Assembly (NCBI GenBank): GCA_943704425.1
Contig: CALSCP010001214.1
Span: 19,606-83,605 of the forward strand
Direction: 5' to 3'
Source of the DNA: Ministeria vibrans ATCC 50519
Taxonomy: Eukaryota; Protista; Filasterea
Length of the DNA: 64,000 nt
Shown here: positions 4,489 through 58,900 of the stretch, piece by piece
Position numbering within the stretch: position 1 is the first letter of the stretch
How the letters are laid out: each line of letters opens with the position of its first letter
Translations under genes and position numbers: made by a program
The notes under the pieces: generated by a model
Database searches by the model: none
What the model was told of the DNA's origin: nothing
Seen by the model: the letters and a program-made list of their open reading frames with translations, nothing else

Positions 4489-7400
4489 TTAACTGCACAA
4501 GGTGACACCCGCGCTGAGAGACGACGAGCACGATGAAGGGCAGATGTGAGTAACAATGGAGCACAGGAGATCGGTCTGCGCATCGTTGACGCTCGCGGCC
4601 ACAAAAGCATGGCGGAGTGTGGCGCGAAGAGCGTAATCGTCAAAGTCACCGAGGCGGCGAGCGCGCTGGCCAATCATGTAGTCCGACGAGATGTTGTCGT
4701 TGGACAAGGCAGCGACATTCAGTGCGGAGCCAATGACCACGCCGTCAATGTAGACGTAAATGTTGCTCTCCGTGGTGGAACCACCGACTCGCTGGAAGGC
4801 GACAGCCAAGTTTCCGCTGGTGGTGCGCAGGCCGGCGATGCCTGAAATGGTGTGAACCGTCCTCGTGCCTTGGACGTTAATGTACTCGATGAGGAGTTTG
4901 TCGTTGTCCAACACGAAAATACCAAACCAACGCGTCTCGGCAACCAGATTGGTCTGCGTCATGTGTGACAGAATCCAGCCCGTAGTGCTCGTGATCAAAA
5001 TGTCAACGGCAAAGACAAAGTCCACGAGCGAAGCCGACGAGGAAACATCAGCACGGGGAATATCAATGCGACCGCCGGTAAGCGTCACCGTGTCAAGCAC
5101 AGCGGAGTTGCTGGCGAGGCGTGAACCGCCCGTGTTAGTATAGTCGGTGTTGCTGTCAAGGATTGGGTAGGACAGAAGGCCGTTGGAAGGGATGCCCTCG
5201 TCACAACGCACTCCCGTGGAGATAGTCAGCGAGCAGTCGCATGTAATAGTCGAGCCCGACACGGAGGCCACACCCCAGTTGCAGTATTCGGCAGCGGTAA
5301 TCTCACACAGGGTTCCGGTGACGCCCGATGGACACGCACAAGTAAAGGCGAGATCGTCGACACTGCCCGAAGAGCAGGTACCACCATTCTGGCAAGGGAA
5401 GTTGGCAGCGGTACAGCCGTCAAGTGACTCGCCATACAAGGACATGCCAGCCTCGAGTTGACCGGGGAGTAGGAAGGTTCCACGAAGGTAATTCTTGTTC
5501 TGCTGGCCTGGATCGCGCGGGCGGCCGCCCAGCATGAACACACCGTCAAACTGATTGCCAAATTCCATGGCGCCGCCGACGGCGGCTTGCTGGCCCACCT
5601 GTACGCCATCAAGGAAGAGGGTGATGACTTCGGAAGGTGACACGGACACAGCGATGGAATGCCATCCAAGTGCCATGTCGACTCCCGTCTCCAACGACAG
5701 TGTCTTTTGGGAAGTGGTGGTGTACGAGAAAAACAGTGTGGTGGAGCGCACAAACAGGCCGAAGTAGCGCTTCAGAGTCGCGTCCACGAGAGGATTGTTG
5801 GTCTTGATTGCGAGCCAGGCACCCAGATTGCGCTCAAAGTAAGGTGCGTCGAAATGGAACCAGCCAAAGAGATGGAAGCCGACCGAGGTGGGTTGCACCG
5901 CGAGAGGCGTGGGAACCAGGCGGAAGGCCTGTTCCAATCGCTGTTCGTTCACGAGCGTGAGCGACTGGCGAGTCGAACTGGGACGACCCGAGCCAGTGAT
6001 AAGCGCATGGTTGGGGTTGACACCCTGAGCCTGCACCACCGAGTCGACGACCATGTCCAAGTCCTTGGTGACAATGTCAAAGGTTTCGCACTCATTGCCA
6101 CTGAAACCCAAGGCACAGACGCACGTGTACGCGTTGCTGATCTCGATACATGAGGCTCCGTTAGAGCATGGGCTGCTCTCGCACGATTGAATCTCATCTG
6201 CGCACACGACACCAGTGAAGCCGGACGCACAGCTGCACGTCCAGGTCAGGTCATCGACGGTCGAGCCGATGCAAGTACCGCCATTGTGGCAAGGACTGTT
6301 GGCAACGTCGCAGCCGGTAAGGCCTTGCTCCGTCTTGCACGTACCCACCGACTCGAGGGTGCCGACGAACAGGTAGTTGTTCGGGAAGCGACCGCCCAGC
6401 GTGAACACGTCGGTGTTGTCGCCGTACGTGAGGCCAGCATTCACTGAGTTGAACGTTTGTGCCACAGCACCGTTAACGACCACTGTAAGGGTGGTGCCCT
6501 CCACCGAGGCGGAGACATGGTACCAAGTGGCGCGCGTTGTCGCCGAGAGAGGAATGGTAAACAGCTGTCCCTCGAGTTGCACCACAAGGTTGCCCAGGTT
6601 TACGAACATTCCGTAATGGCGACCCGAGCTAGCTCCGCTCGACGAGCTCTTAAGCATGATCCAGCCGCCCGAGGGACTCACCGACACCGGTTTCACCCAC
6701 GCGTACATGTGGAGACCGTTGTTGGTGAAGGGCTCGTTCAAGGTGCTCGTCACGGGAACCGTGTTCTTCGCGCCGCTGAACACCATTTCGTTAGCCGTGG
6801 CACCGCCAGGGCGTGTGGTGCTCTGGACTACGCCTGGACCGCTCGAGAGCGACAGAAGGTCAGAGACACAGTCGACAAACTCGCAGTGTTCGCCCGAGAC
6901 TCCGGCGGGGCAGTCGCACGAGTACGACGTCACCTCAGGAACATCCTCGAAACGCACATCGGGACCCAGGTAGTGACGCTCGTTGGAGCGCGTGCCTGGT
7001 GGCGAAACTGAACCCCACGCGACAAAACTGGTACCGGCTCCATAGAAAAAATCGGTGACGGACAGACCTGGTTGGGAGTCCACGTTGCTGTTCGCAATTG
7101 TGGTCACTGTTTGCGCAGTCTGGAAAATAGCCTGCGTGCTGTACACTGTTCCGGCTGTCAATGTCACGGGCGTCGCCAGGTTCTTGTACAAAAAGTTGGT
7201 AGACGATCCAGTGCCAGATGTGGCAGTGGGGTCATTCGGTGTAATCGTCACCGTGGCCAACACAGTGGAATCATCCAGAATCGCGAGCTGAACAGTACCG
7301 CTAACGTCAGTGAGGGTGTCAAGATGGACGGTAAGACCAGTGACAATACGGTCACTGTCCACGCTAAAGTGGTAGCCCACAACACCGGACAATTGCAAGT

Positions 7401-10400
7401 TAAAATTGTGCACAGGCATGTCGAATCCGTTGGCCGATGGTGTGCCATCGACCGAGCATGAGCCTCCATGCTGGCATGGGTTTGAGCCGCACGAGTCGTC
7501 GAGAACCTGACACTGCGTGCCCGTGAAACCAGTGGCACATGTACATGTGTACGAATCGAATGTTTGGCCCTCAACACAAGTACCGCCGTTCTGGCAGGGG
7601 TTCGACGCGCACTCGTCAATGTCGGTCTCGCAATGCGTGCCGGTCGAGCCGACCACGCAAACACACGTGTAGAGGTCGAAATCGTTGCTCTCGATGCACG
7701 TCGCTCCATTCACGCAAGGGTTCGACTCGCACTCGTTGATAACCGTCTCGCACCAGGTGCCGGTCGTGCCCTGGAGGCAGTCGCATGTGTACCAGTCGAA
7801 CGCCGAACCTTCTTCGCAGGTTCCGCCGTTGGAGCAGGGGTTTGACGCGCACTCGTCAACGTCGGTCTCGCACCAGGTACCAGTCGTACCAGTGGCGCAT
7901 GTGCAGGTGTACGAGNNNNNNNNNNNNNNNNNNNNNNNNNNNNNNNNNNNNNNNNNNNNNNNNNNNNNNNNNNNNNNNNNNNNNNNNNNNNNNNNNNNNN
8001 NNNNNNNNNNNNNNNNNNNNNNNNNNNNNNNNNNNNNNNNNNNNNNNNNNNNNNNNNNNNNNNNNNNNNNNNNNNNNNNNNNNNNNNNNNNNNNGTCAAT
8101 GTCGGTCTCGCACCAGGTGCCGGTGGAGCCGGTGGCGCATGTGCAGGTGTACCAGTCGAGAGCCTGGCCCTCAACGCAAGTGCCGCCGTTCTGGCAAGGG
8201 TTGGACTCGCACTCATCAATGTCGGTCTCGCACCAAGTGCCGGTGGAGCCGGTGGCGCATGTGCAGGTGTACCAGTCGAGAGCCTGGCCCTCAACGCAAG
8301 TACCGCCGTTCTGGCAGGGGTTCGACGCGCACTCGTCAATGTCGGTCTCGCACCAAGTGCCGGTGGAGCCGGTGGCGCATGTGCAGGTGTACCAGTCGAG
8401 AGCCTGGCCCTCAACGCAAGTTCCGCCGTTCTGGCAGGGGTTCGACGCGCACTCGTCAATGTCGGTCTCGCAATGCGTGCCGGTCGAGCCGACCACGCAA
8501 ACACACGTGTAGAGGTCGAAATCGTTGCTCTCGATGCACGTCGCTCCATTCAGGCAAGGGTTCGACTCACACTCGTTGATAACCGTCTCGCACCAGGTGC
8601 CGGTCGTGCCCTGGAGGCAGTCGCATGTGTACCAGTCGAACGCCGAACCTTCTTCGCAGGTTCCGCCGTTGGAGCAGGGGTTTGACGCGCACTCGTCAAC
8701 GTCGGTCTCGCACCAGGTACCAGTCGTACCAGTGGCGCATGTGCAGGTGTACGAGTCGAGAGCCTGGCCCTCAACGCAAGTAGCGCCGTTCTGGCAAGGA
8801 CTTGATGCACACTCGTCAATGTCGGTCTCGCACCAAGTGCCGGTGGAGCCAGTGGCGCATGAGCACGTGTAGGAATCAAATGTTTGACCCTCAACGCAAG
8901 TACCGCCGTTCTGACAAGGGTTCGACGCACACTCATCAATGTCGGTCTCGCACGAGGAACCAGTCGTGCCCACCACACACGTACACGTGTACAAGTTTGG
9001 GGTGTTTCCGTTGGAGCACGTTCCACCGTTCTGGCAAGGGTTTGAGTCACACTCGTTGATGTCATTCTGGCACGAAATGCCAGTGAATCCGGCAGGGCAG
9101 GTGCATGTGTACGAGACCACGCCGTTGTTGCAGGTGCCACCATTGGCGCAAGGAGCCGAAAGACAATCGTCGATGTTGGTTTCGCATTGGGCACCAATGA
9201 AATCTTGAGGACATTGGCAGCTGAAAACGTCGATTTCCGAACCACCGTTGACAGGTTCAATGGTAATATCATCGAGAGAGTAGAAAAAACTACTCGACTG
9301 TGAGGCGGACTGGGCAAAGCGCCAACGAAGAGCAAACGCGAAGGGTGCCACGGGAACACTGATAGTCAAAGAGACCTGAGTCCATGAGTTCAAAGTACTG
9401 GTCCATGCGTGCTGACCGTGGAGAGGGTTAGTAGCGTCGTTGACCTGCGAGTCGAAAAGAACTTGCGGGTCATTCGTCACAATGGACTGGTCAGCAATCG
9501 GGCTGAAGTTTTCGCCGTCGAACGAGATTTCAAGGGTCGTGGCCGCGTCGTTGGCGAGACTGTACCGGTGCTGGAACTTGATAACGTAGCCTTGGGTGTT
9601 GGTGCTTGTGATGAGAGGTCCCTCAAGAACCTCGTCGATGTTGGCTTGGCTGTTAATGTCCGCGTACTGGTTGGGGACATCACGGCGTCTGTCGTTGCCT
9701 TCCTGCTCGACCACAAAGTTGTTGGAAGTCTTCGGGGGCGAGTGGACAATAGACTTGGCGACCCAAGGTCCACTAAAGTTAGGCACTGTGTCGGAATCAA
9801 AGTCCATGGGATACGCGTCAGAGGCCCACTGGAAGGGAACCGAGCAGGTGCCACCGTTGAGGCAAGGCATCGAACCACACTCGTCAATGTCCATTGTGCA
9901 GGTGGGACCGGACCACCCAGCGACGCAGGTACACTCAAAGTAGTCAGGCTGGTTGCCCTCGCTGCATGTGCCACCATTTTCACAGGGGTTTGAGTCACAC
10001 TCGTTGTCATCGGTGGCGCATTCGGCGCCCGAGAAACCACTGGGGCAGGCACACTCGTAGGCGTTGAGGTTGGGCGTGGTGCAAGTACCGCCGTTGGTGC
10101 AAGGACTCGAAGCACACTCGTTAATGTCAACCTCGCACTTGGAGCCGGTGTAACCGGCCACACAGATGCACGTGAACATGTCGGAACCATCGGTACAAGA
10201 ACCGCTGTTCTGGCACGGGTTTGAGTCGCACTCGTTCAAGTCAGACTCACATTGAGGACCAGTGAAGCCTGACGGGCACTGGCAGTTGAAGAAATCCGGT
10301 TGGTTACCCTCGTCACAGCTACCGCCATTCTCGCACGGGGTTGAAACACACTCGTCGATATCGGTTTCGCACTGGGCACCAGTGAAACCGGCGGCACATG

Positions 10401-13400
10401 TGCACTCGTAGTAATTCACTTGAACTCCGCCGTCACTGGGCAAGAGCGCCATCTCGTCAATGAACCAACCGGCATAGCTTGTGCCCTGGTCGTTGGCGAA
10501 CGAAAATCGCAGGAGGAATGGCTGGTTGACGAGGGAGTTGCTAAAGGCCAGACGCACCGTGACGAATTGGATAGCGAAATTGACGTTGTCGACACCGATT
10601 TGACCAGACCAAGTCGAGCGTGGAAGGTTGGGCATAGGAACCGTCGTGGCTGATGACTGGTGGTTATACGTACCCGCTTCGAAGGTCGCCTTGGTGGTGA
10701 TGTCGGCCCAGGTTCCGCCATTATCGAGTGAGATGTCAAGAACACCCAAGCCGAAACCAGACTCGGATCTGAGGAGGTGCTTGAAAGCGAACTTGGCGCC
10801 GGCAGAGAAAAGAGTGATGGGGCCAATGGTAACGTCCGATCGTGCAATAATATCCGTCTCGTCCACGTGCAGGGCCTTAACACCGTCACTGGCCAAGGGA
10901 TTTCCGTTCTGGCCGTTCACGGTCGACTGCGTGAATCCCGTCCCGGAGCCGACAGGAGTTGACGTGGTGAATCCAGAAGGCAAAGAGCCGCCCTCAAAGC
11001 TGGTGGGCAGACCCGCGAAGCTCCAGAGGGCACCCTCACCACAGGTGGCTCCGTTGCTGCAGGGGCTTGAGGCACACTCGTCAATGTCCGACTCGCAGTG
11101 CGTGCCGGTGTAACCAGTCACACAGGTGCAACTGTAGCCGTCAACACCATCGCTGCACGAAGCGCCGTTTTGGCATGGACAGGAATTGCACTCATTGATG
11201 TTTTGTTCACAGTGAGTACCGGTGAAGCCGCTGTGGCACGAGCAACTGTAGCTGTTGACACCGTCGAAACACGTGCCAGCGTTGGTACAGGGGCTCGAGA
11301 CGCACTCGTCAATGTTGGTCTCACAATGAGTTCCGGTGTAGCCAAGAACACACATACATGTGTAGCTGTTGATCATGTCGTTGCAGGTACCGCCATTCTC
11401 GCACGGATCGGACACACATTCGTCGATGTTTGTCTCGCACTGGGTGCCGGTGTAACCCGCCACACACATGCAGCTGTAGCCGTCGACGTTGTCGGTACAT
11501 GTGGCGCCGTTCTCACACGGAGTGGACACACACTCGTTGATCTCCGTCTCGCAATGAGTACCAGTGAAGCCGCTGTGACACGAGCAACTGTAGCCATCGA
11601 CNNNNNNNNGTCGGTACATGTGGCGCCGTTCTCACACGGAGTGGACACACACTCGTTGATCTCCGTCTCGCAATGAGTACCGGTGAAGCCGCTGTGGCAC
11701 GAGCAAATGTAGCCATCGACTGAGTCAAGACATGAAGCAGCGTTGGTACAGGGGCTCGAGGCGCACTCGTCGATCTCCGACTCGCAATGAGTTCCGGTGT
11801 AGCCAAGAACACAGGTACATGAGTAGCCGTCGACCATGTCGTTGCAGGTACCGCCATTCTCGCACGGATCGGACACACATTCGTCGATGTTTGTCTCGCA
11901 CTGGGTGCCGGTGTATCCGGCACCGCAAATGCAAGAGAACGCGTCGATGGTGGATGTAGTGCATGTCCCGCCATTTTCGCACGGACTTGAAGCACACTCG
12001 TCAATGTCTTGTTCACACTTGGTACCAGTGAAGCCTGCCTGGCAGGCGCACGTGAAGAATCCCGCTCCTTGATCGTCGCTGCAAGTACCTGCGTTGGTAC
12101 ACGGACTCGATTCGCACTCCTGAATGTCAGTCTCGCAAATATCGCCCGTGTATCCTGCGGCGCACAAGCACGCAAAGTTGTCGGGGGAGTTGCCCTGACT
12201 GCATGTACCACCATTTTCGCATGGCAGAGAGGCGCACTCGTTAATGTCACTCTCGCATTGTTCACCAGTGAAACCATCCTCACACGTACAGAAGTAAACG
12301 TTGGCCATGCTATCTTGGTCGCAGACACCTCCGTTCGCGCAAGGAGACGAGTCGCATTCGTTAATGTCCGACTCACACATGGTTCCGGTGAAACCTGTCA
12401 CGCAAGTGCACTCAAACAAATCGGCAGAGGTTCCCTGCGAGCAAGAACCACCGTTGGAACACGGCTGCGATTCGCACTCGTTGATGTCCGTCTCGCACTG
12501 GGTGCCGGTAAAACCATCGCCACAAGTGCACTCAAACAGATTGGCGGTGCTGCCCTCGGTGCAGGTGCCGCCATTCTCGCACGGACTCGAGTCACACTCA
12601 TCAATCTCGACCTCACATTTTGTTCCCGTCCAGCCGACGGCGCAGGTGCAGATAAACAAGTTTGCTGTGTTGCCTTCAGAACAGGAGCCACCGTTCGCGC
12701 ACGGGGTAGAGGCGCACTCGTCGATATCTGTCTCGCAGTTGGTGCCCGTGTAGCCATTGGCGCACAGACAGGCATACATGTCGGGCGTCTGGCTGTTGGC
12801 GCAGGTGGCGCCATTCTCGCACGGGGTTGAGTCACACTCGTTGATGTCGGTGTCGCAGGTGGTGCCGGTCCAGCCCGCAGGACAGACACAGCCGAAGGAG
12901 TTGATGTTGTCGGTGGTGCAGGTAGCGCCGTTCTCGCAAGGGGTCGAGGCACACTCGTCGATGTCGCTCTCGCAGGTGGTGCCGGTGTAGCCGGGAGCAC
13001 ACTGGCAGCTGAACGAGTTGGGGCTAGGAGTGGTGCAGGTAGCGCCGTTCTCGCAAGGGCTTGAGTCACACTCGTTGATGTCGGTCGAGCAGTCCGTTCC
13101 TGTCATGCCAGCGGGACAGTCGCACTTGTAGAGGGACACGCCTCGTCCGAACAGGTTGGGGCCGAAGCGGAAGTAAGGAGAGTTCGAGATAGGTGTACAC
13201 ACTGAAAACCCCGGAGCTGCCTGGTACGTGGTGTCGTGAGGGCAGTTGAACACAACCTGCTGGTTTTGATTGTTTTGAAGGTTGTTGCACAGACAGGAGG
13301 TGAGGACGTTGATCGAGTTGGCAAACGTAGCGGTTCCAGCCTGGCTACTGCCGGTTTGACCAGACACGTAGCCGTCGGTGGCCGATGAATCGTATGATGC

Positions 13401-14705
13401 CATCAGGGTGTACGTTGTGCCGGCGCTGAGGGTAAGCGCCTGGCTGTACGCAACGTAGCGGAAATTGCCACGGTCGGTGACGCCAGTTCCAACGGCGACG
13501 GGCACAGTGAGTACACCATTGTTACCACCGACACCAATAGGAGTGCTGCCGGAGCCCTCAAACAGGGCGATCTTGTGCGCGTTTTGCAGTGACCCGGAGA
13601 CCATGTAGAAACCGAGCTCTTCGACGATGAAGTCGACGGCAGGCGTAAACTGGAAACCAAGAGTACGGAATCCACCTGTGCCTGTGTTTTTGTGGGTTGA
13701 TGGCGCATTAACAATGGTGAAAAACTCTTCACGTGCATCACTGCATGTGGCCGCGCTGTCGCATGGAGAAGTGTTGCAGGGATTGTCGAATGCTTGAACC
13801 GACGACGCAGCTGCAAGTACAGCAACGGCTACGAAAAGTCTCTACAAAAAAAGAAACGAAAGAAAAAAATGAGAAAATCACAAGACGTATTTTAAGAATA
13901 ATATGAAATTAAGTAGATAAAAGACACGATAAACGACACTACGGGCACTGCGAACTGAACAACACACGGAACAGACAAACGATAGTTTTTTTTGTAAAAA
14001 CATCCAACAAAAAAAACAAATAGACGTGTGAGGGCTTGAATGCGATGTCTGAAGGAAAACGGCTGTGTGTTGTGTCCTTCAAGCAGTCTTCCTCCTTTTA
14101 CCGCCTTCTCGACTGTGCCCGAAACGCTCTGACAAACCCCATGTTGAAAATTTTTTCTAACTTGGACACATCGACGTTTTTGCAAAGGAAGCAGGGTAGC
14201 GCGTGATTGAGATAAGACAAAGTGACGCATGCCACGTGTGGATTTATGACCACTGCTGCCTGGAGACGCAGTGCGTGCGGTAACAAATGAGCTGTTCCAC
14301 GTTCAAAAAAAAACGGTAAGAAAAAAAAAACCGTCTTCCCCATCTAAAACGAGCGAGGTGACAAATTGAACGGGTTTCGACGCCCGACGAAAGAATGTCA
14401 AGAAAACCAACGGATTGTCATATGAGACGCAACAAGGGAGAGGCGATGAAAAACCAGAAAAGCCAAGTTTTGATAAAGGATAGTCGCGCGCTCTGTAAGA
14501 ACACGCATCTTGATGGAAAAAGTGCAGAGGACACCAAATGCGAGCAATCCTTGTGCTCAGGGGTCTGACAGGGCTGCCAAACGGTGTAGGCAAAGAGCCT
14601 CTGTGGTCCTTTTGAGTAATATCCAATGCAGAATGATATGATGAAAAAAAAAAAAAAAAAAAAAAAAAAAGAAAGGACGTAAGCCGTTAGCCTTACCGAA
14701 ACCAT
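4489..14705 (-). CDS. Giant secreted EGF-repeat protein (~3,100 aa). Signal peptide, roughly 50 calcium-binding EGF repeats, four inserted beta-sandwich domains (two DUF4082-like, two immune-inhibitor-A/MAM-like) and three C-terminal LamG-like domains; no TM segment
   Basis: ORFs 11373-13604 and 4489-11619 join across an 8-N gap. The large exon starts at 13841 (acceptor ttttgtag) and reads [23 protein letters not shown] probable 9-nt first exon ATG GTT TCG|gtaagg lies at 14705-14697. Repeats read DIDECxSxPCxNGGTC...CxCxxGFTGxxCE. LamG-like motifs include [19 protein letters not shown] and [20 protein letters not shown]. Confidence 0.88.
7565..8990 (-). repeat. Near-identical coding tandem repeats (120-bp, 40-aa EGF unit) inside the secreted EGF gene
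   Basis: 8101-8460 is three nearly identical 120-bp units. 7621-7915 matches 8461-8755 (offset 840 = 7 x 120) with only 2 differences seen. Confidence 0.9.
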
Positions 14706-37221: not shown

Positions 37222-40200
37222 TCAAGAGGAACTCAAATCCATTGCGTTGGAGGAGGAGTGCTGTTGAGACGACTGAACTGCCGAAAATTTCGCTGAAAGT
37301 GCAGCATTGCCACTCACAAGCGAAAGGAGCTCACGCAGTTTCGCATTGGAACCTGAAAAGAGAGAGACACATGGGGGCAAGTGTGAAAAAATGCGAGTTG
37401 AGCTTAAAAAGAATGGGTGTTCGTACCAACATCAGGAATGGTACTGATAGAAGAAAGACACTGCATCGCAGACGAAATCATTTCTTGATTCTTGTCCACC
37501 TAACACCACCACCAACAATAACAACAACAAAAAAGGTATAGTGAAGTGTTAGGCAAACACAGACCCAGACACAAACATGGCAAATTGTACCTCTTGCTTG
37601 ACGGCCTTTTCGGCGACTCGAGTCGTAATGGTTGCCTTGAGAGTGTCCACCACAGCATCAAGGTGATGGACTACCACGGGCGCCTTGGTGCTCGCAAGAC
37701 GTGACAGCATCATGTGACAAAGCATCTTAATGTCGTACTGGTCCTGACACCTAAAACATGAAAAGTAAAACCAATCTTTTTAATTAATACTATTATAATA
37801 ATAATAAAAAATTAAAGATAGCGCGGGAAGCGGGCGCTTTCATGGTCGAAAAAAATGGGCACATAGAGTCCCAGCGTTTCGAGGATTGCCACCAGATCCG
37901 TCGACACGGTGTGCACAATGACATCCAGGGCGACCCGGTATAATATTATCATTATTATTAGTAATTTTTATGTTGCTTGCACACTGCATACTAAACACTC
38001 TCTGATTCTGCTTTTTTTTTGCGTGATTTGTTGTCAATTTCTTACCCACGAATGACATACTCCAGGAAATCAAAGGGACTGATCATGTCGAGACAGGTCT
38101 CTTGCAGCGTGTACATGCACTCAAAGGCAGCCTTGCGTGCCGTGAGTCCATCATCGACAGTGTGCGAAAACGGACCCATTTTGACTTCGCGAATGAGGTC
38201 CGCATTGATGTTGGTCTGGTTGTAAAGGGCGGGCAGCAGCTGTTCAAGGTGATCGCGGAGAACGGCGGGTCGACTGCGTGCCGCCGAATTGAACGTGACC
38301 AGAGCAATGCGACGCACAAATATTTCAGGATCGGCAATGAGCTTGAGGAAGCCAAGAATGTACTGAGGCAGGATGGCGTCGACAGCGTTACGCGTGTGCG
38401 GGTCAGATGTAAGCGTGAATTTGATGGCGGCGACAGCGGCGGAGCGCGCAAACGACGACTCAGACTGGAGGAGAGTCGCCAATCGTGCAAAGAGCTCGGC
38501 GGGTGAGGTTAGAGTGAGTTTGCCAATGCACTCGGCAATCACCGTGTGCGTGCCTTCCTCGTTGTTCGCGCAGTTGGTAAACAGTATGGACCAAATACCG
38601 TCAATAAAGGGTTGCAACTGCGCAATGCCCTCGGGCGTGCTCGCCTGGATGGTGATTGTTTCACGTAGAGCCTGCAACAAAAGGTACTGGCGCGTAGGCT
38701 GCTCGCGAATGGCCGCCTCGAGACGCGGCAAGAACACCGCCATGTTACCAACCGCAACGCAACCAAGCGCATATGACGCGGCCGCCTTCACCTCCTCGCA
38801 TTGATCCGTGATCGACGAGAAAAGTACCTGCTGAATGGAATCGTAGGCGCTCAAATCGTTATGACGACCAATCTCGCCGACCGACAGCAGCGCCAACAGA
38901 CGTACGCTGTCGGATGCACCCGACGCAGGTGCGAGGTCCCCTAAAAACTTGTTGACCACATCCGAAATGCCACCGTTGTTAGCGCTACACACGGCCGCAA
39001 CAAACTTGGCGGTGGTTGCAAAGGCTTGCTTGGGCAACACAAGTGAGACCACACCAGAACCCCCCGCGGGGGCAGCGGCTGCTGCTGCGGCGACGGCAGG
39101 TACAGCGGACATGGATGTGGGTGCGAGTGTTTCAGGGTGGTAGACGGGAGCAACAAGGGCATCGAGCAACGAGGTGCTGTTGAGTCCGTCGCGTTCCATC
39201 ATGGCAACGCGTCGAAGCAACTGAACAAGTGCCGTGAGAGCGCCACCCTGGAGAAGAGGCGACTTGACAAGCTTTAGAAGCACGTTAATAAGTGAGGTGG
39301 AACGTGTCGAAGAGGTAAGCAGGAGCGCGGCGGCCGCATTGACGGGGCCCAGACAGTCCAAGATGTCCTCAAGAAGCTGGAGTGCGAGGTGTGCCAAGTA
39401 GAGGTCGGTGTCGCCTAGGAGCGCGACCAGTTCGTCGAGGAGTGTCGTGATGAGCGTGTCGCTGCGAGCTGACTGGCAGCGCACAATAGTGGCGCGCAAT
39501 GCAGACAGAGCGGCAACGCGGAGAGGACGGCTGTTCTTGCGGAGAAAGCCGGTTAGGGTCTCGACGGCGTCGGCGGCTACCGGCGTCACGTCAATAGCAA
39601 GGGGTGTCGAAGCAATGAGACAGAAAACGCGGGCGCTTGTAAGACGCGTCATTTCGGAACGGAGACGCTCGACAAGAGAGCCAAGAGCGATGGACAGGTG
39701 ATCACCAAGGGCGTCGCCCATGTTGGCAATGAGACGACCAACGCAAACGATGCTACGCTCCTTCACCTCCTGGTCGACATCGGTGGCGCACAGACGTTCC
39801 ATGGCGCACGTGTAGATACCTTCAAGGTGGGGCACAAACTCAAAGACGAGGTCCGAGTCGGTGTCGGGTGCGAGTGGCCGCATGCAGCGTACGAGAAGAG
39901 CAAGGAGTGCAAGTGCCTCGCTGGACACCTTGTAGAAGGAGTCGCCAACGGCGGCGACCGTGCTGCGCACCAGCAGGGCAGCGTGCGTATGGAACACCGA
40001 CGGACGATGCGTAGCAACGAGTGTTTGCAAGAGTTGAAGAGCGTTGACGCGCAGGTTCGAAGTGACACCCTTCTCGTCAACCGAGTAGATGATGCCCGGC
40101 AGAAGTGCCCCCAATTGGTTGCCAAGGATGCCTGGCTGCGAGGTGGCGAGCTGGCGAAGCAGGGTGAACACAGCCTGACGTGCCTTGGGGCTCTTGTCCT

Positions 40201-41677
40201 TGAACAGTTTGCGCACAGCACGCACCAGACGCGGCACATCGCTGGCAATCATTACGCCAACGTCCGAGAAGAGCTCCATGGGCGCAGCAACTGTTGAGGC
40301 ACTCACGCTACTGAGCACGGCAGTTGACGCCTGAGCGCCCAGCATGGCTGACGAGGACACATCGAGAAGATCGTGATGGCTGTGCGCGAGCGACTGCGAC
40401 GCCTGACGCAGCATTTCGACGTAAGTTGCGATGATTTCCACCTTGACATTTTCTTCGCGCTCCTTGAAGCGCGACAGTAGCTTGGCCGAGATGGTCTGGA
40501 AGATCTCACTGAGATGGTGACCCTGCATAGTGACAACAGAGAGGAGGCACTTGGCCGAGGCACGGCGAACCTTCCAGCTCATATCCTCGTCGTCGGCATA
40601 GTCATCGTCGTCGGCATAGTCGTCATCGTCGTTGTTGTCGTCGTCGCCACCAAAGTCGTTGTCGACGTCCTCCACGTCCATTGCCGTCTGGTTGTCGCCG
40701 TTGGCCTCCTCCTCATCGTCGTCGTCGTAGTTGTAGTTGGGATCGTAAGAGACCAGTTCGAGACACAGCTCGACGACGCTTGGAAGATGACACTCCATCG
40801 ACTTGATGCAGCCCACAACCATAAGGGCGAGAGCATGAATGCAACCTTCACGGAGTTCGTCACCTTCGCCGTCGTCTTCGCGAGCGCGAGCCAAATCGAG
40901 CAAGAGCGGTACAACAGTGGCCACATGGGGTGCCATGCGCTGACCCACACGACGAGCAACAACACCGAGACAGTTCACATAGGTCTGGAGCAACTCGGTA
41001 TTGCCAGAACAGGCGTCGAGACCCGAAAGAAGCTGGTCCATGAGGTTGGAGAAGAGTGAGTCGGCGGCGGATGCGACTGCACGACCAAGTGCCACGGTGA
41101 CACGCTTGCGTACCACCGCTCGCGGATGATCAAGCAACGGGACAAGAGCTTGCTGAATGGTCTTTTGCTTGGAACTAAGCGCCGGACCAAAGCGCGAAAG
41201 AAGCTCACTGAGCACCTCAAGAGACTCGAGAAGGACGCTCACGTCAGCAACGAGTGTCGCAGCGCCAAGCAGACGGTCCACAAGATGGCGTGTCACAGTG
41301 GTCGAGTGTGGCGAGTCGACAGGCAGTTGTTGAAGAACAGCCTTGATGCCTGGGAAGAAACAGCAAGAAAATGGAATGTATCAACGGGTGTATTTGTGAT
41401 GATTGTATTATAATAATAATAATAGTTCTGTGTATGTGTGTATATATATGCATGTGCTTAGTGTGTGCTTAGTGTGTGTGTGCTTAGTATGTGCTTAGCA
41501 CTTTGTGCTTTGCTTGTTGTTAGTGTGTGTCTGTATGTGCTTAGTGCGTGTGCGTGGTGCATACCAACAGCAGAAATGTCGCGAAGTTGCTCTGTGTCCG
41601 ACAGGACATTGTCGCACAGCGTGTTAAGGAACTCGGTGATCTGAGCGTCACGAAGACTTCGCGTCAATGGAGCCAAG
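37222..41677 (-). CDS. CAND1: Cullin-associated NEDD8-dissociated protein 1 (HEAT repeats, TIP120 domain), 5'-partial
   Basis: CDNVLSDTEQLRDISAVG, SYDPNYNY, DDEDMSWKVRRASAKCL, RFKEREENVK, DVDQEVKERSI, EEGTHTVIAECIGKL and LIREVKMGPFSHTVDDGLTARKAAFECMYTL; ends AMDLSSS*. The first ~70 aa are missing, probably in the gap at 42054-42063. Confidence 0.96.
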
Positions 41678-49969: not shown

Positions 49970-52900
49970 CGTGTTTCACTCTCTCTCTCACACTCACCAG
50001 CGACGCGCTCCTTGTGCCCTCATCAACGGCAACGATTGCCAAAACAACGGTGCGTGCCCGCCCGTGTCCGACAGCGACGCCACCGGCTGCTACTGTCCCG
50101 TGGGCTTCCTCCCACCGGACTGTGCGCAAGCAACGTCTTCATCGACGTGCACAAACGTAAGTTCGCTGATTGTGCAGCACACAACGCACACACACACATG
50201 CGAGATCATCCCTCATCCACCATGCGTCTTCCCACACACACACACACACACTCTCTCTCTCTCTCTCTCTCTCTCTGACATGTGCGCCCTATTGATGATC
50301 GCCTTTCTCTCGTAGGGGCAAACTTGTCACTTTCGTGGGCTGTGTACCTACACAGCGGCTGCTCCATGTCACTGTCTGACTGACACGACTGGCACCAATT
50401 GCGAGACTTGCTCGCTTGCATCCCTCTCAGGGGCCTGTCCAACCCTTCTGGGGGAATACTGCGGCACCTCGAGCAACGCCGAGGCAGTCTGCGTCACGTT
50501 TGAGGCCAATTCAATTGTCTACGATGGACCCGACGTGCTCACAGGCGGCACCGTCTCGCTCGCGACCGGGCCTAGCTCGTGTTCAGCCGACTCGCCTGGC
50601 TCATCCTTTTTCAGTCTTGACGCCATTGCGACAGTGCCCTCGAGTGTCGCTGGGCTCACCTCGCGCTGGCGCATTCAATTCACCTCGGACGACACAATCA
50701 CCATCATCTTCACGTCGCCCGCCTACTGCGCTCGCGTCGAGACCTATGGCGCAACCACAACACAGGCGGTCTCGGCTGTGCTTCAACGTCAAGTACAGCC
50801 CAGCCCGAGTGCCCAGCCCACCGCATGTGCCTCCAACCCGTGCCAGAATGGCGCCACTTGCGCCGCCGACGCACAAGTCTTCTTTCAGTGTACCTGCGCC
50901 GCCACCTTCACCGGCACTCTTTGCGACCAAGTCATTGGCGCTGCCCTTCCTTGCGACTCGTCTCCCTGTCAGAACGAGGGTACTTGCACCAACGACAGTC
51001 CGTCGGAGTTTTCGTGTGATTGCGAAGAGGACTTTGAAGGCGATCTGTGCGAAACGGAATTGCCAGCGCCGCCGGGCGCCTGTGACTCAGAACCTTGTTC
51101 CTTTGCCGGCACCATTGACTGTTTCGACAATGGCTTTGATTTTTTTATCTGTCAATGTGAAGAAGGGTACCAGGGTGACCTCTGCGAACAGCAGACTGTC
51201 GGAGGAATCTGCGGCTCATTTCCCTGCCAGAATGGAGGCACCTGCTCCGATTCTACTGGCGCTGTGGTGTGCACTTGCCCGACCGGCACCACTGGATCCT
51301 TCTGTGAGGTTGAAATTAATCCCTGCGCCTCCATTCCGTGTCAGAACAACGGTGCTTGCTTCGACCTCGGCGGCTATGAATTCTCCTGCTCGTGCGAGCC
51401 CGATTTCACCGGTACCCTTTGTGAGGCTGCTCTACTCCCGTGCGATTCCAATCCCTGTCAGAATGGTGCCACTTGCCAAGCTGTTGGTACCACATCCTAC
51501 ACGTGTACGTGCACTTCGAGCTACTCGGGCACTCATTGTGAACTGTTCGATCCGTGCGTTTCGTCACCCTGTCAAAATGGCGGTGTTTGCGTCGACTCGC
51601 CCGATGACTTTTCTTGTGTCTGCCCGCAAGGCTTCACAGGTACCCTTTGCGACGTTGTCGTGCCTCTGCCTTGCTCGTCCAATCCGTGCCAGAATGGCGC
51701 AACGTGCACCGACCAGGGAGTGGGCACCGACTACGTCTGTACGTGTGCGTCTCTCTTCACCGGCACCACCTGCGAGTCTGCCTTGCCTCTCGCGTGCGAG
51801 TCGTCGCCTTGCCGCAACAGCGGTACGTGCGTCGACCAGGGCTCCAGCAGCTTCTTTTTCTGCGTCTGCCTCGAAACGTACCACGGCGACGTGTGCGAGA
51901 CCTTTGTGCCGCCCGAGTGCGACTCGAGTCCCTGTGTCAACGGCGCCTCCTGCCGCGAAGACATCCTCGGCTTTGTCTGCATTTGCCTCGAGACGCACAC
52001 GGGTGCTCACTGCGAATCGCTTTTGCCTACTCCGTGTGAGTCGTCGCCCTGTGCCAATGCTGCGACGTGCGCCGACACGGGCGTCAATAGCGACTTTGTG
52101 TGCACTTGCGCCACCGACTTTACCGGCACCCATTGCGAGTCTTACATTGGCATTCTGGACCATTGTAACTCATCGCCGTGCTTTGGTTCGTCCAGCTGCA
52201 CCGATACGACCACCGGCTACTTTTGCACGTGTGCCACGGGATTTACAGGTGTTCACTGTGGTGCTCTCGTGCCCGTCTGCGACTCACAACCGTGCGTTAA
52301 CAGTGGTTCCTGTGTTCAAACAGGGCCAGCGCTCTTCTCGTGCATGTGTTCCACCGACTACACGGGAGACCTGTGCGAAACACGCATTCCCCACGCTTGC
52401 GAGTCGAATCCGTGTCTTCACGGCGCCTCGTGCGACGACTCGGGACCGTCCTTCTACACGTGCACCTGTCCCGCAGACTACACTGGCCTCACCTGTGAGT
52501 CAGTCATTGACAACTGTGCCCTGGATCCTTGCTTGAACGCAGGCACCTGTATTGACGGTGTACACACGTACACGTGTGTGTGTGCGTCCGGCTACTCGGG
52601 CACACGCTGTGCCGAGAACATTGATGAGTGTGCCTCGTCGCCCTGCCTCAACTTTGGCTTTTGCACCGACGGTGTCAGCTCGTACACATGCACTTGCAGT
52701 CAGTTTTACACGGGCGAGCTTTGTGAGACGACCTTGCCTAACGCGTGCGAGTCGTCTCCTTGTCAAAATGGCGCGCCTTGCTCCCACAACGGTCCTGCCG
52801 AGTTTACATGTCAGTGCTCGGGTGACTACGCTGGCATTCACTGCGAAACCTTCATTGGTCCACCGCCCGCCTGTGACTCGAACCCTTGCCAGAATGGCGC

Positions 52901-55900
52901 GTCGTGCAGCGAATTGCCTGACCACGGAGGCTTCCTGTGCGACTGCACGGCCGCCTTTACGGGCCTCGACTGCTCCATCGAATTGACCCCCTGTGACTCG
53001 TTCCCGTGTCAGAACGGTGGCACGTGTGATGTATCGCTCCAGACCTTTGTGTGTACCTGTGCCGAAGACTTCACGGGCGCCATGTGCGAGTCGTTTGCCG
53101 GCGAGTGCACTTCGTCGCCTTGCCAGAACAGCGGTGTGTGTGTCGAGGCATCCGGCGGTGGCATCGAGTGCCAGTGTGTCTCGGGCTCGACTGGAGCCCT
53201 GTGCGAGGTGGTCATCGACGCGTGCGACTCGAGTCCGTGTGGCAATGGTGGCACGTGTACACCGCAGGGCCTTGTGCACTCGTGCGCCTGTGCACCCGGT
53301 TTCATGGGCGACTTTTGTGAACAGTCTGTGCAACCGTGCGACTCGTCGCCCTGTCTCAATGGCGCCTTTTGCGCCAACGACGGCTCTGATTTCTTCTGTG
53401 ACTGCGGCAACACAGGCTATGCGGGCACAACGTGCGAGATTTTCCTGGGCACCAACACCGACTGTGACTCGTCGCCGTGCCACTTTGGCGCCGAGTGCTT
53501 TTCGGGCGAGTTTGGTCTCGAGTGCTTTTGCGACGCCGGCTTTGAGGGACTCTTGTGTGAGACTAACATTGACGAGTGTGCCTCGCAACCATGCCTCAAC
53601 GACGCCACCTGTGTCGACGGCGCCAACAGCTTCAGTTGCTCGTGCACCTCGGGGTTTACGGGCTCGCGCTGTGAAAACGACCTGAACGAGTGCGACTCGT
53701 CACCTTGCATCAATGGCGGGGCCTGTGTCAACAGTCCCAACCGCTTCTTCTGCACGTGTCCCTCGGGCTTCTTTGGTCTCACTTGCGAGGCGACGGGCTG
53801 TTCGCCCAACCCTTGTCAGAACGGTGGTACATGTTCGTTCAATGGCGCTGCCCAAGAGCTCTTGTGTGCCTGTGCGACTGGCTACACAGGTGACTACTGC
53901 GAGGTTGAGATTGATCATTGTGCGTCGGATCCGTGTGATGCAAGTAACACCCTCTCGTGTGCCAGTTCCGTCGCCGGCTACGCGTGTTCGTGTCGCGCTG
54001 GCTACACCGGCATCACATGCACCGTGGACATTGACGAGTGTGCGTCGTCGCCTTGTCAGAACACGGGCACGTGCAACAACCACATTGACTCTTTCACGTG
54101 CACCTGTCCACCGGGTACGACCGGCGACCTCTGCGAGAACAACTTCAACGAGTGTGCTTCGAACCCGTGCTTCAACGCGGGCACCTGCATGGACGGTATT
54201 GACTCGTACACGTGCGTATGCGTCGCGGGCTTTACTGGTCTCAAGTGTGGTGAAAACATTGACGACTGTGCTTCTCAGCCGTGCATCAATGGCGCAACCT
54301 GCCTTGACTCTGTCAATTCGCACAGTTGCACTTGTCGTCCGGGATTCACAGGCGACCACTGTCAAACGGAGTTTGACGAGTGTGCGTCGTCGCCGTGTTT
54401 CTTTGGTGCGACGTGTACCGATGTTGAAAATGGATTTATGTGTACTTGTAGCATGGGCTACACCGGCTCGACGTGTGCCTTTGACATTGACGACTGTGTA
54501 TCGCTGCCCTGTGCCCACGGTGGCACCTGTACCGACATGCTCAACGACTTTGCGTGTGCGTGTGCCGCGGGCTTTACCGGTACTCGCTGCGAGTCGGAGT
54601 TCATCGAGTGTGCGTCATCACCATGCCAGAACGGCGCTACTTGTGTCGAGGGCGCCAATTCGTTTTCGTGTCAGTGCGTGCTGGGCCACACGGGCGTGCT
54701 ATGCGAGTCGCAAATTCTCGAGTGTGCCTCGACTCCGTGTCGCAATGGCGCTACCTGCGTAGACATGCTTGATGGCTACAACTGCGTGTGTGTGGCGGGA
54801 TTCACAGGCGACGAGTGTGGCGTTGAGATTAGCGAGTGTCTATCGTTTCCCTGTCAAAACGGCGGTCAGTGTGTCGATGGACTCAATGAGCACACGTGTG
54901 AGTGCGAGGCGGGCTTTACGGGCTCCGAGTGCGAGGTGGACATTGACGAGTGCACGTCGCAACCGTGTCAGGGCGGTGGCACGTGCACGCCGGGCAACAA
55001 CCAGTACACGTGTACCTGTCGTGCGGGTCTCTTTGGTGCCAACTGCGAGTCGTCCAGTTGCACGCCCAATCCATGTGTCCAGGGCACTTGTTCGCTCGTG
55101 AACAACGAAGCACAGTGTGCCTGCGACGCCGGCTACACCGGAGCCTTTTGCGACGTTGAGATTGACCATTGTGCGTCATCACCGTGTGTCGCGGACCAGT
55201 CTATCTCGTGTTCGGTGGTCAACAATGCGCCCGTGTGCGTGTGCCACGGAGGATTCACTGGCGATCGATGCGAGTCGAACATTCTCGAGTGTCTCTCGCA
55301 GCCGTGTAAGAATGGCGGAACGTGTGTCGATGCCGAAAACTCTTATGCGTGTGTGTGTGCCACGGGCTACACCGGAGCCGATTGCCAGACCAACGTGAAC
55401 GAGTGCGCGTCGCGTCCATGTCGCAATGGCGCCACTTGCGTTGACGGCGATGCATCCTTTGTGTGCATCTGTCGCACCGGCTACACCGGTGACCTGTGCG
55501 ACGCAGACATTGGCGAGTGCACTTCGTCACCGTGTCAAAATAGCGCCACCTGCAACGAACTGGTCAACTCGTACGCGTGCACGTGTGCGGCGGGATTCAC
55601 CGGTACACACTGTGCCAACGACATTGACGAGTGCGCCTCGAACCCGTGCGTCAATGGCGCTACCTGTGTCAATGGTATTGACATGTACTCGTGCACCTGC
55701 GCGCCGGGCTACACCGGCAACGAGTGCGCGGTGAACATTGACGAGTGCAACTCGTCGCCTTGTCAGAATGGTGCCACTTGCATCGACATGGTGTCGAGCG
55801 CGTCGTGTGTGTGCGTCGTGGGCTACACCGGTAGCATGTGTGAGTCGAATATTGACGAGTGTGTGTCGTCGCCGTGTCTTAATGGTGGTAATTGCATTGA

Positions 55901-58900
55901 TGCGCTGGACGCTTTTTCGTGCTCGTGTGCGGCGGGTTTTACCGGCGAACTGTGTGCGACGAATCTGGACGATTGTGTATCGATGCCCTGTCAGAATGGT
56001 GGTTCCTGTGTGGACGGAGCGAACGCGTATCAGTGTGCGTGTCCCGCGGGCTTTGACGGACTTCACTGCCAGTCGAGTGGCTGTTCGCCCAACCCGTGTG
56101 TTGAGGGATCGTGTGCCCTTGTGAACGGTACCATTGCATGTACATGCGATGAGGGCTTCACGGGTGCTCTGTGTGACGCCGAAATTAACCTGTGCGACTC
56201 GTCGCCATGTGTCGCGGCGAACACGGCCCAGTGCGTGTCGGGCGATGGTGTGTACACTTGCCAGTGTCAGGCGGGATTTAATGGTGACGCGTGCGAGGTC
56301 AATGTTGACGAGTGTGCCTCGATGCCGTGTGTCAATGCGGCGACCTGCGTGGACGGCACCAATGGTTATGCATGTGCTTGTCAGACTGGCTACACGGGTG
56401 TGCAGTGCGAGACGGACATTGACGAGTGTGCTTCGTCGCCGTGTCTCAATGACGCCCCTTGCTCGACACCCTCGAGTGGTCTCTTTGCCTGCGCCTGTGC
56501 CGGTGGCTTCGCGGGCGCCCGATGCGAGTCGAACATTGACGAGTGTGCGTCGTCGCCGTGCACCAACGGCGGTACATGCGAGAATGGACCGAATCACTGG
56601 TCGTGTGTGTGCATTGGCGGGTTCACGGGCGACCAGTGCGAGACGGAGTTTGACGAGTGTGCGTCGATGCCGTGTCTGCACGCTGGTTCGTGCGCCGACA
56701 CAGTTAACGGCTATGTGTGCACGTGTGCTGTTGGCTACACGGGCAGTCAGTGCTCGGCAAACATTGACGACTGTGCCACAAATCCGTGTCAGAATGGCGC
56801 CACTTGTGTGGACATGGTCGACGCGTATGCTTGTGTGTGCGACGCGGGCCTCACCGGCGACAAGTGCCAGTCGATCATTGGCGGGTGTGCTTCGGCGCCC
56901 TGTGTGAGTGCCAACACACTGTCGTGCACCAGTGCCTCCATTGACTATACGTGCACGTGCAAGACGGGCTTCACGGGTTTGCAATGCGAGTCGGCTATTG
57001 ATGACTGTGCCTCGGAGCCGTGTGCCAACGGTGGCACCTGCCTCGATCAGCTGAGCGGCTACTCATGCGTGTGTGCAAGTGGATTTGGCGGTATTGGCTG
57101 TGTCAACAACGTCGATGAGTGCTTGTCCATGCCCTGTCTCAATGCGGGTACCTGTGTGGACGCGATCAATGGCCATACATGTACCTGCGTGACTGGCTTC
57201 ACGGGCGACGCGTGCGAGACGAACATTGATGAGTGCGAGGGGATCGCACCGTGCGCGAATGGTGGCACTTGCGTGGACGCAGTCAGCAGCTACGTGTGCG
57301 TGTGTGCCTCGGGCTACACGGGTGCCGTGTGCGCTGTGGACGTGGACGAGTGCGAATCGTCGCCGTGCCAGAACGGAGGAACGTGTACTGATTCGGCCGA
57401 TGCCTATGTGTGCGAGTGTGCTACAGGCTTTGCGGGCTTTTCGTGCGAGAGTGACCAGGTACCATGTGACTCGTCACCATGCGTGAATGGCGCAACGTGT
57501 GTCGGCAAAGGGCTCGCCTGGTCATGCTCGTGCTCGCCAGGATACACGGGTGCTCAGTGTGAAGCAGACATTGACGAGTGTGCGTCGGATCCGTGTGCGA
57601 ACGGAGGCACCTGCTCTGCCCCACAAGTGGGCGAATTCGCGTGTGTGTGCTCGACGGGTTTCAACGGACCCCAGTGCCAGTTCCCCGACGGCGACTGTTC
57701 GTCGTCGCCGTGTCAGAATGGCGGAACATGCAGCACGGTGGTTTCGGCGAGTGTGTGCGCATGCATGCCGGGCTACACCGGCGCCCAATGTGAGGTGAAC
57801 ATTGATGAGTGTTTGTCTATGCCATGTCAGAATGGCGCTACATGCGTCGACGCAGTCAATGGCTACTCGTGCACCTGTGCTGCAGGGTTTACGGACACAA
57901 CCTGTGCGACGATGTTCACCGAGTGTTCGTCGAGTCCGTGTTTGTCGGGGGGTACCTGTGTGCAAGGCAGTGGGATGTACACGTGCACGTGTGTGCCGGG
58001 CTTTGTGGGCGACCACTGTGAGTACGAAGAGGGATCGTGCGACAGTGCGCCGTGCCTCAATGGCGCCGAGTGTGTCGTGGCGGGCGGCGGCGGCGCGTCG
58101 CGTCGTCGTCGTGGTGCGGGTGACTCGTACACGTGCAATTGTTTGGCGGGCTACACGGGCGTGCATTGTGAGTCGGACATTGACGAGTGCGCGTCCACAC
58201 CGTGTACCAATGGCGGCACCTGTGCCCAGTCGGTGGTTGGTTTGTACGCGTGCACTTGTGTTCCCGGCTTCACGGGGGTGTCGTGTGCCGTCAACATTGA
58301 CGACTGTGCGTCGACTCCCTGCGCGAACGGCGCTACGTGTGTGGACGGAGTCAACGGGTACGTGTGCACCTGTGCGTTAGGCTTCACCGACAGCAACTGT
58401 CTGACGGACATGGACGACTGTGCGTCATCACCGTGCGTGTCACTTGGCACAGCGTCGTGCGGAAATCTAGTGGGTAGCTATGCATGCGCATGCAAAGCAG
58501 GCTACACAGGTGATCGGTGCGAGACGGATATTAACGAGTGTGCATCGAACCCGTGTGTGAACCAGGGGGTGTGCACACAGCCGAGTGCGAACGAGTGGAA
58601 GTGTGTGTGTCCGCCAGGCTTTGCGGGCGACCGTTGCGAGGCGAACAACGACGAGTGTGCGTCATCACCGTGTCTCAATGGGGCGGTGTGTGCAGATGGT
58701 TTTAATGGGTTCGTCTGTCAGTGTGCACTCGGGTTTACGGGGACGATGTGCGAGTCGGAGCTGAAGGAGTGTGCGTCGTCACCGTGTCAGAATGGTGCGT
58801 CATGTACCGAGGTGGGTGTTGTCTTTGAGTGTGCATGCCCCGCGGGCTACACGGGTTCGCAGTGTGAGACTGACATTGACGAGTGTGCGTCGTCGCCGTG

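Follow-up and report, generated by a model that had tools for sequence, protein, structure and literature searches.

The subject of this report is a 64,000-nucleotide stretch of a Ministeria vibrans contig, hereafter called the window, and unprefixed coordinates are positions within it. A nearly intron-free gene occupies ~13841-4489 of its minus strand and encodes a secreted EGF/LamG protein of more than 3,100 residues, in which four EGF modules are each interrupted by a long insert. An acceptor-like AG is located immediately upstream of the large exon (~13841), and the start codon presumably lies on an additional exon farther upstream. In translation, the long frame is closed by a stop codon at 4489-4491. 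A strict cysteine-spacing pattern identifies at least 33 ordinary EGF units in the protein, of which 25 of 33 are preceded by the calcium-binding motif D/N-x-D/N-E/Q-C. Within the C-terminal 797 residues, Pfam detects Laminin_G_3 (3.9e-16) and Laminin_G_2 (3.5e-6). No transmembrane-like segment was found, and the C-terminal region contains no hydrophobic window. Several tandem 120-nucleotide EGF units, at 8095-8953 and past an assembly gap to ~7500, are near-identical and thus point to recent intragenic amplification.

In all four split modules the insertion is in frame and falls between Cys3 and Cys4 (Table 1). These hosts are not contiguous modules of ~40 residues, as 172-206 residues are interposed between the two cysteines. 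The Pfam EGF model hits the two halves separately, with profile positions 1-14 aligned before the insert and positions ~16-31 after it. The hosts retain six cysteines with EGF spacing. In an alignment of 13 sequences with DUF4082-like inserts, all six cysteines are invariant and the usual EGF consensus is kept. Modules #2 and #3 are preceded by the calcium-binding motif and #4 by a degenerate form of it, whereas #1, with which the series of modules in the protein begins, has none in front of it. An earlier note on the window had proposed that four EGF repeats are split at one shared point by domains of ~170-200 residues, and that each EGF resumes intact afterward. All four were found within a few bases of the positions it gave, and the Cys4-6 halves are recognized by the EGF model.

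Table 1. Coordinates of features in the minus-strand gene carrying the split EGF modules.
Feature	Position	Strand	Basis
Large exon start; encodes hydrophobic end of signal peptide	13791..13841	-	Translation and DNA
Split EGF #1; DUF4082-like insert	N-half 13778-13734; insert 13733-13134 (200 residues, 4 Cys); C-half 13133-13089	-	
EGF array; 12 ordinary units, 9 of 12 with the D/N-x-D/N-E/Q-C motif	11610..13088	-	Unit and motif count
8-N assembly gap within an EGF unit, between #1 and #2; apparent one-base frame slip	11602..11609		
Split EGF #2; MAM/reelin-subrepeat-like insert	N-half 11076-11032; insert 11031-10414 (206 residues); C-half 10413-10369	-	
Split EGF #3; second MAM-like insert	N-half 9879-9835; insert 9834-9229 (202 residues); C-half 9228-9184	-	
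Tandem array of 120-nucleotide EGF units, partly near-identical; includes the 179-N gap	7492..9183	-	Repeat structure
179-N assembly gap, between #3 and #4, within the 120-nucleotide tandem EGF array	7916-8094		
Split EGF #4; DUF4082/PHR-like insert	N-half 7491-7444; insert 7443-6928 (172 residues); C-half 6927-6883	-	
C-terminal region; LamG-like domains alternating with EGF units, Cys-containing tail, stop	4489..6882	-	Pfam

The inserts of this gene are of two types. Inserts 2 and 3 are predicted to be jelly rolls resembling MAM domains and reelin subrepeats, and inserts 1 and 4 to be DUF4082/PHR-like sandwiches. Sequence matches divide the four in the same way, in agreement with the proposal that two domain types share the site. 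Inserts 1 and 4 are mutually related (E = 2e-4) and match Pfam DUF4082 (PF13313) with 17.9 and 17.7 bits, respectively, against a gathering cut-off of 28.4 (E = 0.003). Four paralogous inserts of this genome join them in one family; of its six sequences, five match DUF4082, the best with 2e-7. Inserts 1 and 4 are thus probably distant relatives. The match of insert 1 to the profile built from the DUF4082-like family (A3; 1.7e-63) arises by construction, insert 1 being one of the rows of A3. A search of the ESM Atlas with module #4 gave scores of only 0.82, and the presence of DUF4082 and PHR clusters among the matches is a lead only. A word-based search with insert 4 alone against proteins of 1,300-4,150 residues produced no match, a result that does not show absence.

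Neither insert 2 nor insert 3 has a Pfam match. In NCBIfam models of bacterial M36 metallopeptidases, however, the two inserts hit one and the same accessory region (1.5e-10 and 4.4e-7), and insert 3 is matched by module #2 in a search of its own genome with 8.5e-9. When module #2 was compared by phmmer with 1.8 billion representative proteins, 197 matches were obtained (best 7.7e-16), nearly all of them to the insert only and mostly in bacterial-looking multidomain proteins. Some of these bacterial homologues match Pfam Reelin_subrepeat-B and InhA-like_MAM near threshold. Against the PDB, a profile of the MAM-like family detects reelin (8e-9) and the InhA peptidase (0.016).

Split EGFs are a genome-wide habit and are not peculiar to the gene in the window; the scale implied by the earlier note was therefore too small. 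The assembly that was searched comprises 29.7 Mb in 2,860 contigs. A split EGF was defined as a Cys1-3 half, 60-400 residues with few cysteines, and a Cys4-6 half, without overlap with an ordinary EGF. The ~230 kb sampled of this genome yielded 43 split EGFs, whose inserts fall into at least five families. Of these modules, 41 unique ones were detected in the fetched stretches, against 981 ordinary units, and two more in a further stretch of contig C320. This ratio of split to ordinary units is biased upward, as the sampled stretches were partly picked for DUF4082-like matches. Module #2, used as a query against the genome, revealed three further complete modules, two on contig C2358 and one on C2236, and the DUF4082-like profile matches 39 places.

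BLAST clustering of the 41 modules defined the insert families. The largest is the DUF4082-like family, with 19 members including #1 and #4 of the window, followed by a family of 132-136 residues without a Pfam match (seven members), the MAM-like family (five members, including #2 and #3 of the window) and a family of 196-204 residues, also without a Pfam match (five members, on contigs C439 and C320). One pair of inserts and three singleton modules complete the set.

Several individual loci deserve mention. A gene on contig C894 (L014:2737-8913, plus strand; identical with ENA protein P0030) has six split EGFs, each with a two-cysteine domain of the 132-136-residue family, whose seventh member is on contig C138 (L009:2308-2775). 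P0030 also has a weak match to Amidoligase_2 at its N-terminus. One singleton, on contig C159 (L034:2835-3662, plus strand), has a VWA domain in the Cys3-Cys4 hairpin of an EGF (Pfam VWA, 1.3e-8), and this domain carries the D-x-S-x-S metal-site motif. Another singleton among the 41 pattern matches, on contig C945 (L024:5923-6693, plus strand), is ambiguous: a Laminin_G_3 domain is located between an EGF ending after Cys4 and an irregular EGF start. The junction at this locus may be of another type, or it may have decayed.

The earlier note had suggested that AlphaFold be run on split EGFs together with their inserts, and modules #2 and #4 were modeled in this way. Model 1 consists of split EGF #2 between two ordinary EGFs (window 10249-11190) and was built from an alignment of 31 sequences; its mean predicted local distance difference test (pLDDT) is 84 and its predicted template modeling score (pTM) is 0.70. 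Model 2, which consists of two ordinary EGFs followed by split EGF #4 (window 6883-7731), was built with 13 paralogues and reached a pLDDT of 70 and a pTM of 0.51. Both models have predicted strands at Cys3 and Cys4. In agreement with the earlier note, the insertions between Cys3 and Cys4 are predicted to lie in the major hairpin.

In both models the split EGF re-forms and is collinear with its neighbors. Foldseek aligned Model 1 with entries for Notch EGF11-13 over ~310 columns, with TM-scores normalized to the target of 0.72-0.78. VIA-align superposed it on Drosophila Notch EGF11-13 with a Z of 10.5 and a root-mean-square deviation (rmsd) of 2.0 Å, matching 108 of 115 residues across model residues 1-314. 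Only ~102 residues of Model 1 lie outside the insert; therefore, both split halves must align to the middle Notch EGF, with the three modules collinear. Model 2 superposes on Notch1 EGF20-24 (Z of 10.3, 110 residues) and on EGF11-13 (108 residues), spanning model residues 1-283. Over both models, the superpositions on Notch EGFs range from 2.0 to 3.0 Å. Because each split EGF and its neighbors superpose on contiguous Notch EGF triplets, the halves are predicted to re-pair and to form, with those neighbors, a rod that stays straight; these properties are shown only in the models. From the same models we infer that the split modules may form disulfides 1-3, 2-4 and 5-6.

The modeled inserts also have structural matches of their own. 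Insert 2 (residues 53-255 of Model 1) is predicted to be a MAM-type beta-sandwich. It matches the MAM domain of meprin beta with a Z of 14.2 and 2.8 Å over 157 residues, reelin with a Z of 13.6, and the MAM domains of RPTP and neuropilin with a Z of ~13; many MAM and reelin chains score 12-13.6, and Eph ligand-binding domains and CBM61 score ~10. Insert 4, in Model 2, is like PHR domains (Z of 10-11) and phage baseplate sandwiches.

The models bear on the alternative that the halves are remnants of separate truncated EGFs and that the globular domain is an ordinary bead between modules. Loss by deletion of the last part of one EGF and the first part of its successor, on either side of a domain, would leave the same pattern, the LamG domain between incomplete EGF pieces at L024:5923-6693 is an ambiguous locus of this kind, and the pairing of the halves is a prediction. 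However, all 43 modules combine a Cys1-3 half with a Cys4-6 half to give exactly six cysteines, and the EGF consensus is kept in the 13-sequence alignment. Unpaired halves would each leave three free cysteines. Moreover, in each of the two models the halves come together into a canonical EGF that is in line with the modules next to it, and for the related case of laminin the same topology has been solved experimentally (PMC5338690). We therefore regard truncation as improbable.

According to a second alternative, the inserts are spliced out as introns or lost from the mature mRNA in some other way, which would make the protein a plain EGF array. The organism does have introns, as the acceptor-like site and the further first exon upstream of the gene indicate. 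However, the four inserts are open in the frame of the gene over 516-618 nucleotides, whereas the other two frames carry 1-14 stops, and shuffled versions were free of stops in only 0-4 of 2,000 cases per insert. The inserts have a GC content of 0.54-0.57, whereas that of the non-coding sequence preceding the gene is 0.42, and their GC content at third codon positions is 0.59-0.68, compared with 0.69 in the neighboring EGF array. No GT...AG pair was found at the EGF-insert junctions, in line with the earlier claim that there is no intron there. The inserts also have significant protein homology and confident folded models. In a paralogous pair of DUF4082-like inserts, the ratio of nonsynonymous to synonymous substitution rates (dN/dS) is 0.22 at a dS of 0.76, as expected under purifying selection. 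The open frames, the coding-like composition and the protein homologues indicate that the inserts are coding domains and not introns. At the level of sequence, these in-frame domains occupy one fixed site of the EGF, are under selection and recur across loci. Removal from the mRNA is thus very unlikely.

Related proteins were also sought in other assemblies and organisms. A word-based homologue search with module #2 and its EGF flanks was dominated by ordinary EGF proteins and was uninformative on the insert, although it yielded four environmental split-EGF proteins. Two candidates for independent organisms were rejected. P0196 (JGI; metagenome contig L001) reads the same as contig C2358, being near-identical by eye, and P0030 (ENA) is 100% identical to contig C894. 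Therefore, two paralogous split-EGF genes come out alike in independent assemblies. Two other proteins have no near-identical match in this genome: P0031 (JGI sample 3300071654), with three split EGFs, and P0016 (JGI 3300045300), with one. The inserts of P0031 were considered as kin of the 196-204-residue family (C439, C320), and this was rejected, as there is no relation. They do match inserts of split EGFs on C320 that belong to a family of ~205 residues, with an E of 1e-18 and 30% identity over 174 residues. Because the P0031 and C320 inserts are homologous at this level, at least one composite EGF-plus-insert module is common to two organisms. The ~205-residue family, which has no Pfam match, is found on contig C320 (L119:893-1570 and L119:3257-3943, minus strand) and on a metagenome contig of another organism (JGI sample 3300071654; L037:2568-6248, plus strand).

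A metagenome scan based on EGF-flanked alignment covered 80 environmental EGF-rich loci with ~800 ordinary units, one deliberately added contig being left out of this count, and gave two doubtful split candidates only; locus L059 of the scan, for example, is a plain EGF array. Under the same pattern, no split EGF was detected in the named animal multi-EGF proteins from the word-based search with module #2. A 3,317-residue EGF protein of another environmental eukaryote (P0026, from ENA contig ERZ27317592, locus L038) was flagged by the first pattern scan as having two EGFs with inserts of 84-91 residues at Cys3-Cys4, but not by the stricter census.

Two assembly gaps interrupt the gene in the window. 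The EGF unit starts that flank the 179-N gap, at 8211 and 7851, are spaced by 360 nucleotides, or 3 x 120; thus, both frame and repeat register are kept across the gap as written. The length of this gap is an estimate, the number of repeats inside is not fixed by the sequence, and the gap probably hides collapsed repeat copies. The flanks of the 8-N gap are consistent with a single codon missing from the EGF unit. Because one gap separates #3 from #4 and the other separates #1 from #2, it is likely, but not proven, that #1 is continuous with #2-#4 and that all four modules reside in one polypeptide. Neither gap touches a split module or its junctions. An assembly error that fused the repetitive EGF DNA with unrelated coding sequence is scarcely credible even in a gene with two N gaps and near-identical tandem repeats and in a genome fragmented into 2,860 contigs, because the split-EGF junctions all lie away from gaps, the same architecture occurs at dozens of loci with diverged sequences, and assemblies made separately by JGI and ENA contain paralogous split-EGF genes that are 100% identical or nearly so.

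We consider it highly probable that these are real nested domains, in which a complete beta-sandwich is set into the major-hairpin turn between Cys3 and Cys4 of four EGF modules in one giant secreted EGF/LamG protein. Several points weigh against this conclusion. The gene is known here from its DNA alone, and it contains the two gaps just described. All four inserts in the window score below the Pfam gathering threshold, DUF4082 itself is without an assigned function, and the roles given to the inserts are deduced. The disulfide pairing is read from secondary structure, confidence values and superpositions of AlphaFold models. Model 2 is of only moderate confidence, and both models have low confidence near the junctions.

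If the nested arrangement is as modeled, the termini of each insert would lie side by side and run into the two strands of the hairpin. The insert is closely flanked by Cys3 on its N-terminal side and by Cys4 on its C-terminal side, and the usual bonds of these two cysteines to Cys1 and Cys2 would form a covalent clamp at its base. The EGF could then still fold and stack on its neighbors, so that the rod would be continuous and the insert would project sideways on a short two-strand stalk. The protein is presumably an extracellular adhesion or matrix protein, and the domains mounted on its side, both MAM-like and DUF4082/PHR-like, probably serve in ligand binding or self-association, in which case the rod may act as a display scaffold.

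The composite EGF-plus-insert modules may have originated on a small number of occasions, one or more for each insert family, with later duplications multiplying them inside the giant EGF genes of the genome and from one such gene to another. Because the members of a family are homologous to each other and occupy the same site, the data point to few founding insertions followed by duplication of whole modules, rather than to many repeated insertions. The earlier note had favored repeated or duplicated insertion over exon shuffling. Its duplication half is the part that holds, and exon shuffling in an ancestor with later loss of introns is possible.

A broader proposal is that the Cys3-Cys4 hairpin is a general plug-in socket in this protist lineage, into which unrelated domains (MAM-like, DUF4082/PHR-like, VWA and at least two families without a Pfam match) are installed and exchanged to build, in a combinatorial manner, adhesion proteins whose domains are mounted on the side of a rigid rod, and that the laminin LE-L4 arrangement of animals is a surviving relic of the same mechanism and not an isolated case. 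We regard this proposal as speculative and rather doubtful.

The window contains another giant EGF gene at 50316-60518, with ~69 EGF units. One unit of this gene (58038-58169, plus strand) has a loop of 20 residues in the same Cys3-Cys4 hairpin. The loop is Gly/Arg-rich, consisting in part of consecutive Gly residues and, after them, four Arg, and may be a protease site. Elsewhere in the window, the top two database matches of a CAND1 exon (38042-41296, minus strand) are flagged UNVERIFIED_CONTAM in a sturgeon assembly and have 34-41% identity. The remaining named matches listed are all animal, with ~40% identity, and none is close.

If confirmed, nesting of this kind would show how nature has repeatedly attached folded domains to the side of a stiff EGF rod, a design rule that could be useful in protein engineering. 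It would also provide a comparative handle on why laminins and perlecan hold L4 inside LE modules. Finally, it would flag a blind spot of domain annotators, which report half EGFs or miss split EGFs wholly.

Among known systems, the integrin I domain is a VWA domain nested in a beta-propeller or in a hybrid domain. The VWA-in-EGF module on contig C159 resembles it in general principle only, in that a domain with adjacent termini is plugged into a loop of its host; the two hosts differ in fold, and kinship with integrins is not shown. Reelin repeats combine an EGF with the same kind of jelly roll as inserts 2 and 3. However, the topology is inverted, because the reelin EGF is located between two jelly rolls (subrepeat A, EGF, subrepeat B), whereas here the jelly roll is within the EGF. 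In structure, insert 2 is most similar to the MAM domains of meprins, RPTP mu/kappa and neuropilin (Z of 12-14), and an accessory region of bacterial M36/InhA peptidases resembles inserts 2 and 3 in sequence. Known MAM and InhA-like MAM domains, however, are arranged linearly between other domains, and the inserts in the window score below the Pfam MAM thresholds.

To our knowledge, insertion of a domain into an EGF-type module is known essentially from laminin-type LE modules; we found no description of nested canonical EGF modules in the literature, which is not proof of absence. The LE modules of perlecan carry an inserted L4 domain, as do those of laminins. In laminin alpha and gamma, L4 (laminin IV type A), a beta-sandwich like those of CBM, MAM and Eph domains, is nested between Cys3 and Cys4 of an LE module, and this nested LE-L4 type of topology has been solved experimentally (PMC5338690). 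The earlier statement that EGF proteins add domains between repeats and not inside them thus overlooks a precise precedent. The LF domain of laminin beta, between LE5 and LE6, leaves the LE rod uninterrupted, with the flanking modules packed as if contiguous (PMC5338690). As in the protein described here, a beta-sandwich departs from the line of EGF-type modules, but LF comes after a truncated LE module and not inside the Cys3-Cys4 loop of an intact one.

The split EGFs of M. vibrans share with laminin LE-L4 the site of insertion, between Cys3 and Cys4 of an EGF-type host. They differ in the host, which is a six-cysteine EGF, probably of the calcium-binding type, that matches EGF and not laminin EGF models, whereas LE has eight cysteines. 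They also differ in the inserts, which have no detectable sequence relation to L4: even with E values as high as 1 allowed, Pfam did not assign any of them to the laminin L4 family. Moreover, several unrelated insert families, including an alpha/beta VWA domain, occupy the site, and it is used dozens of times in one genome. What is new here, in comparison with these systems, is that, in a microbial eukaryote, several folds without relation to each other make systematic use of the Cys3-Cys4 site, and that they do so in the common EGF with six cysteines.

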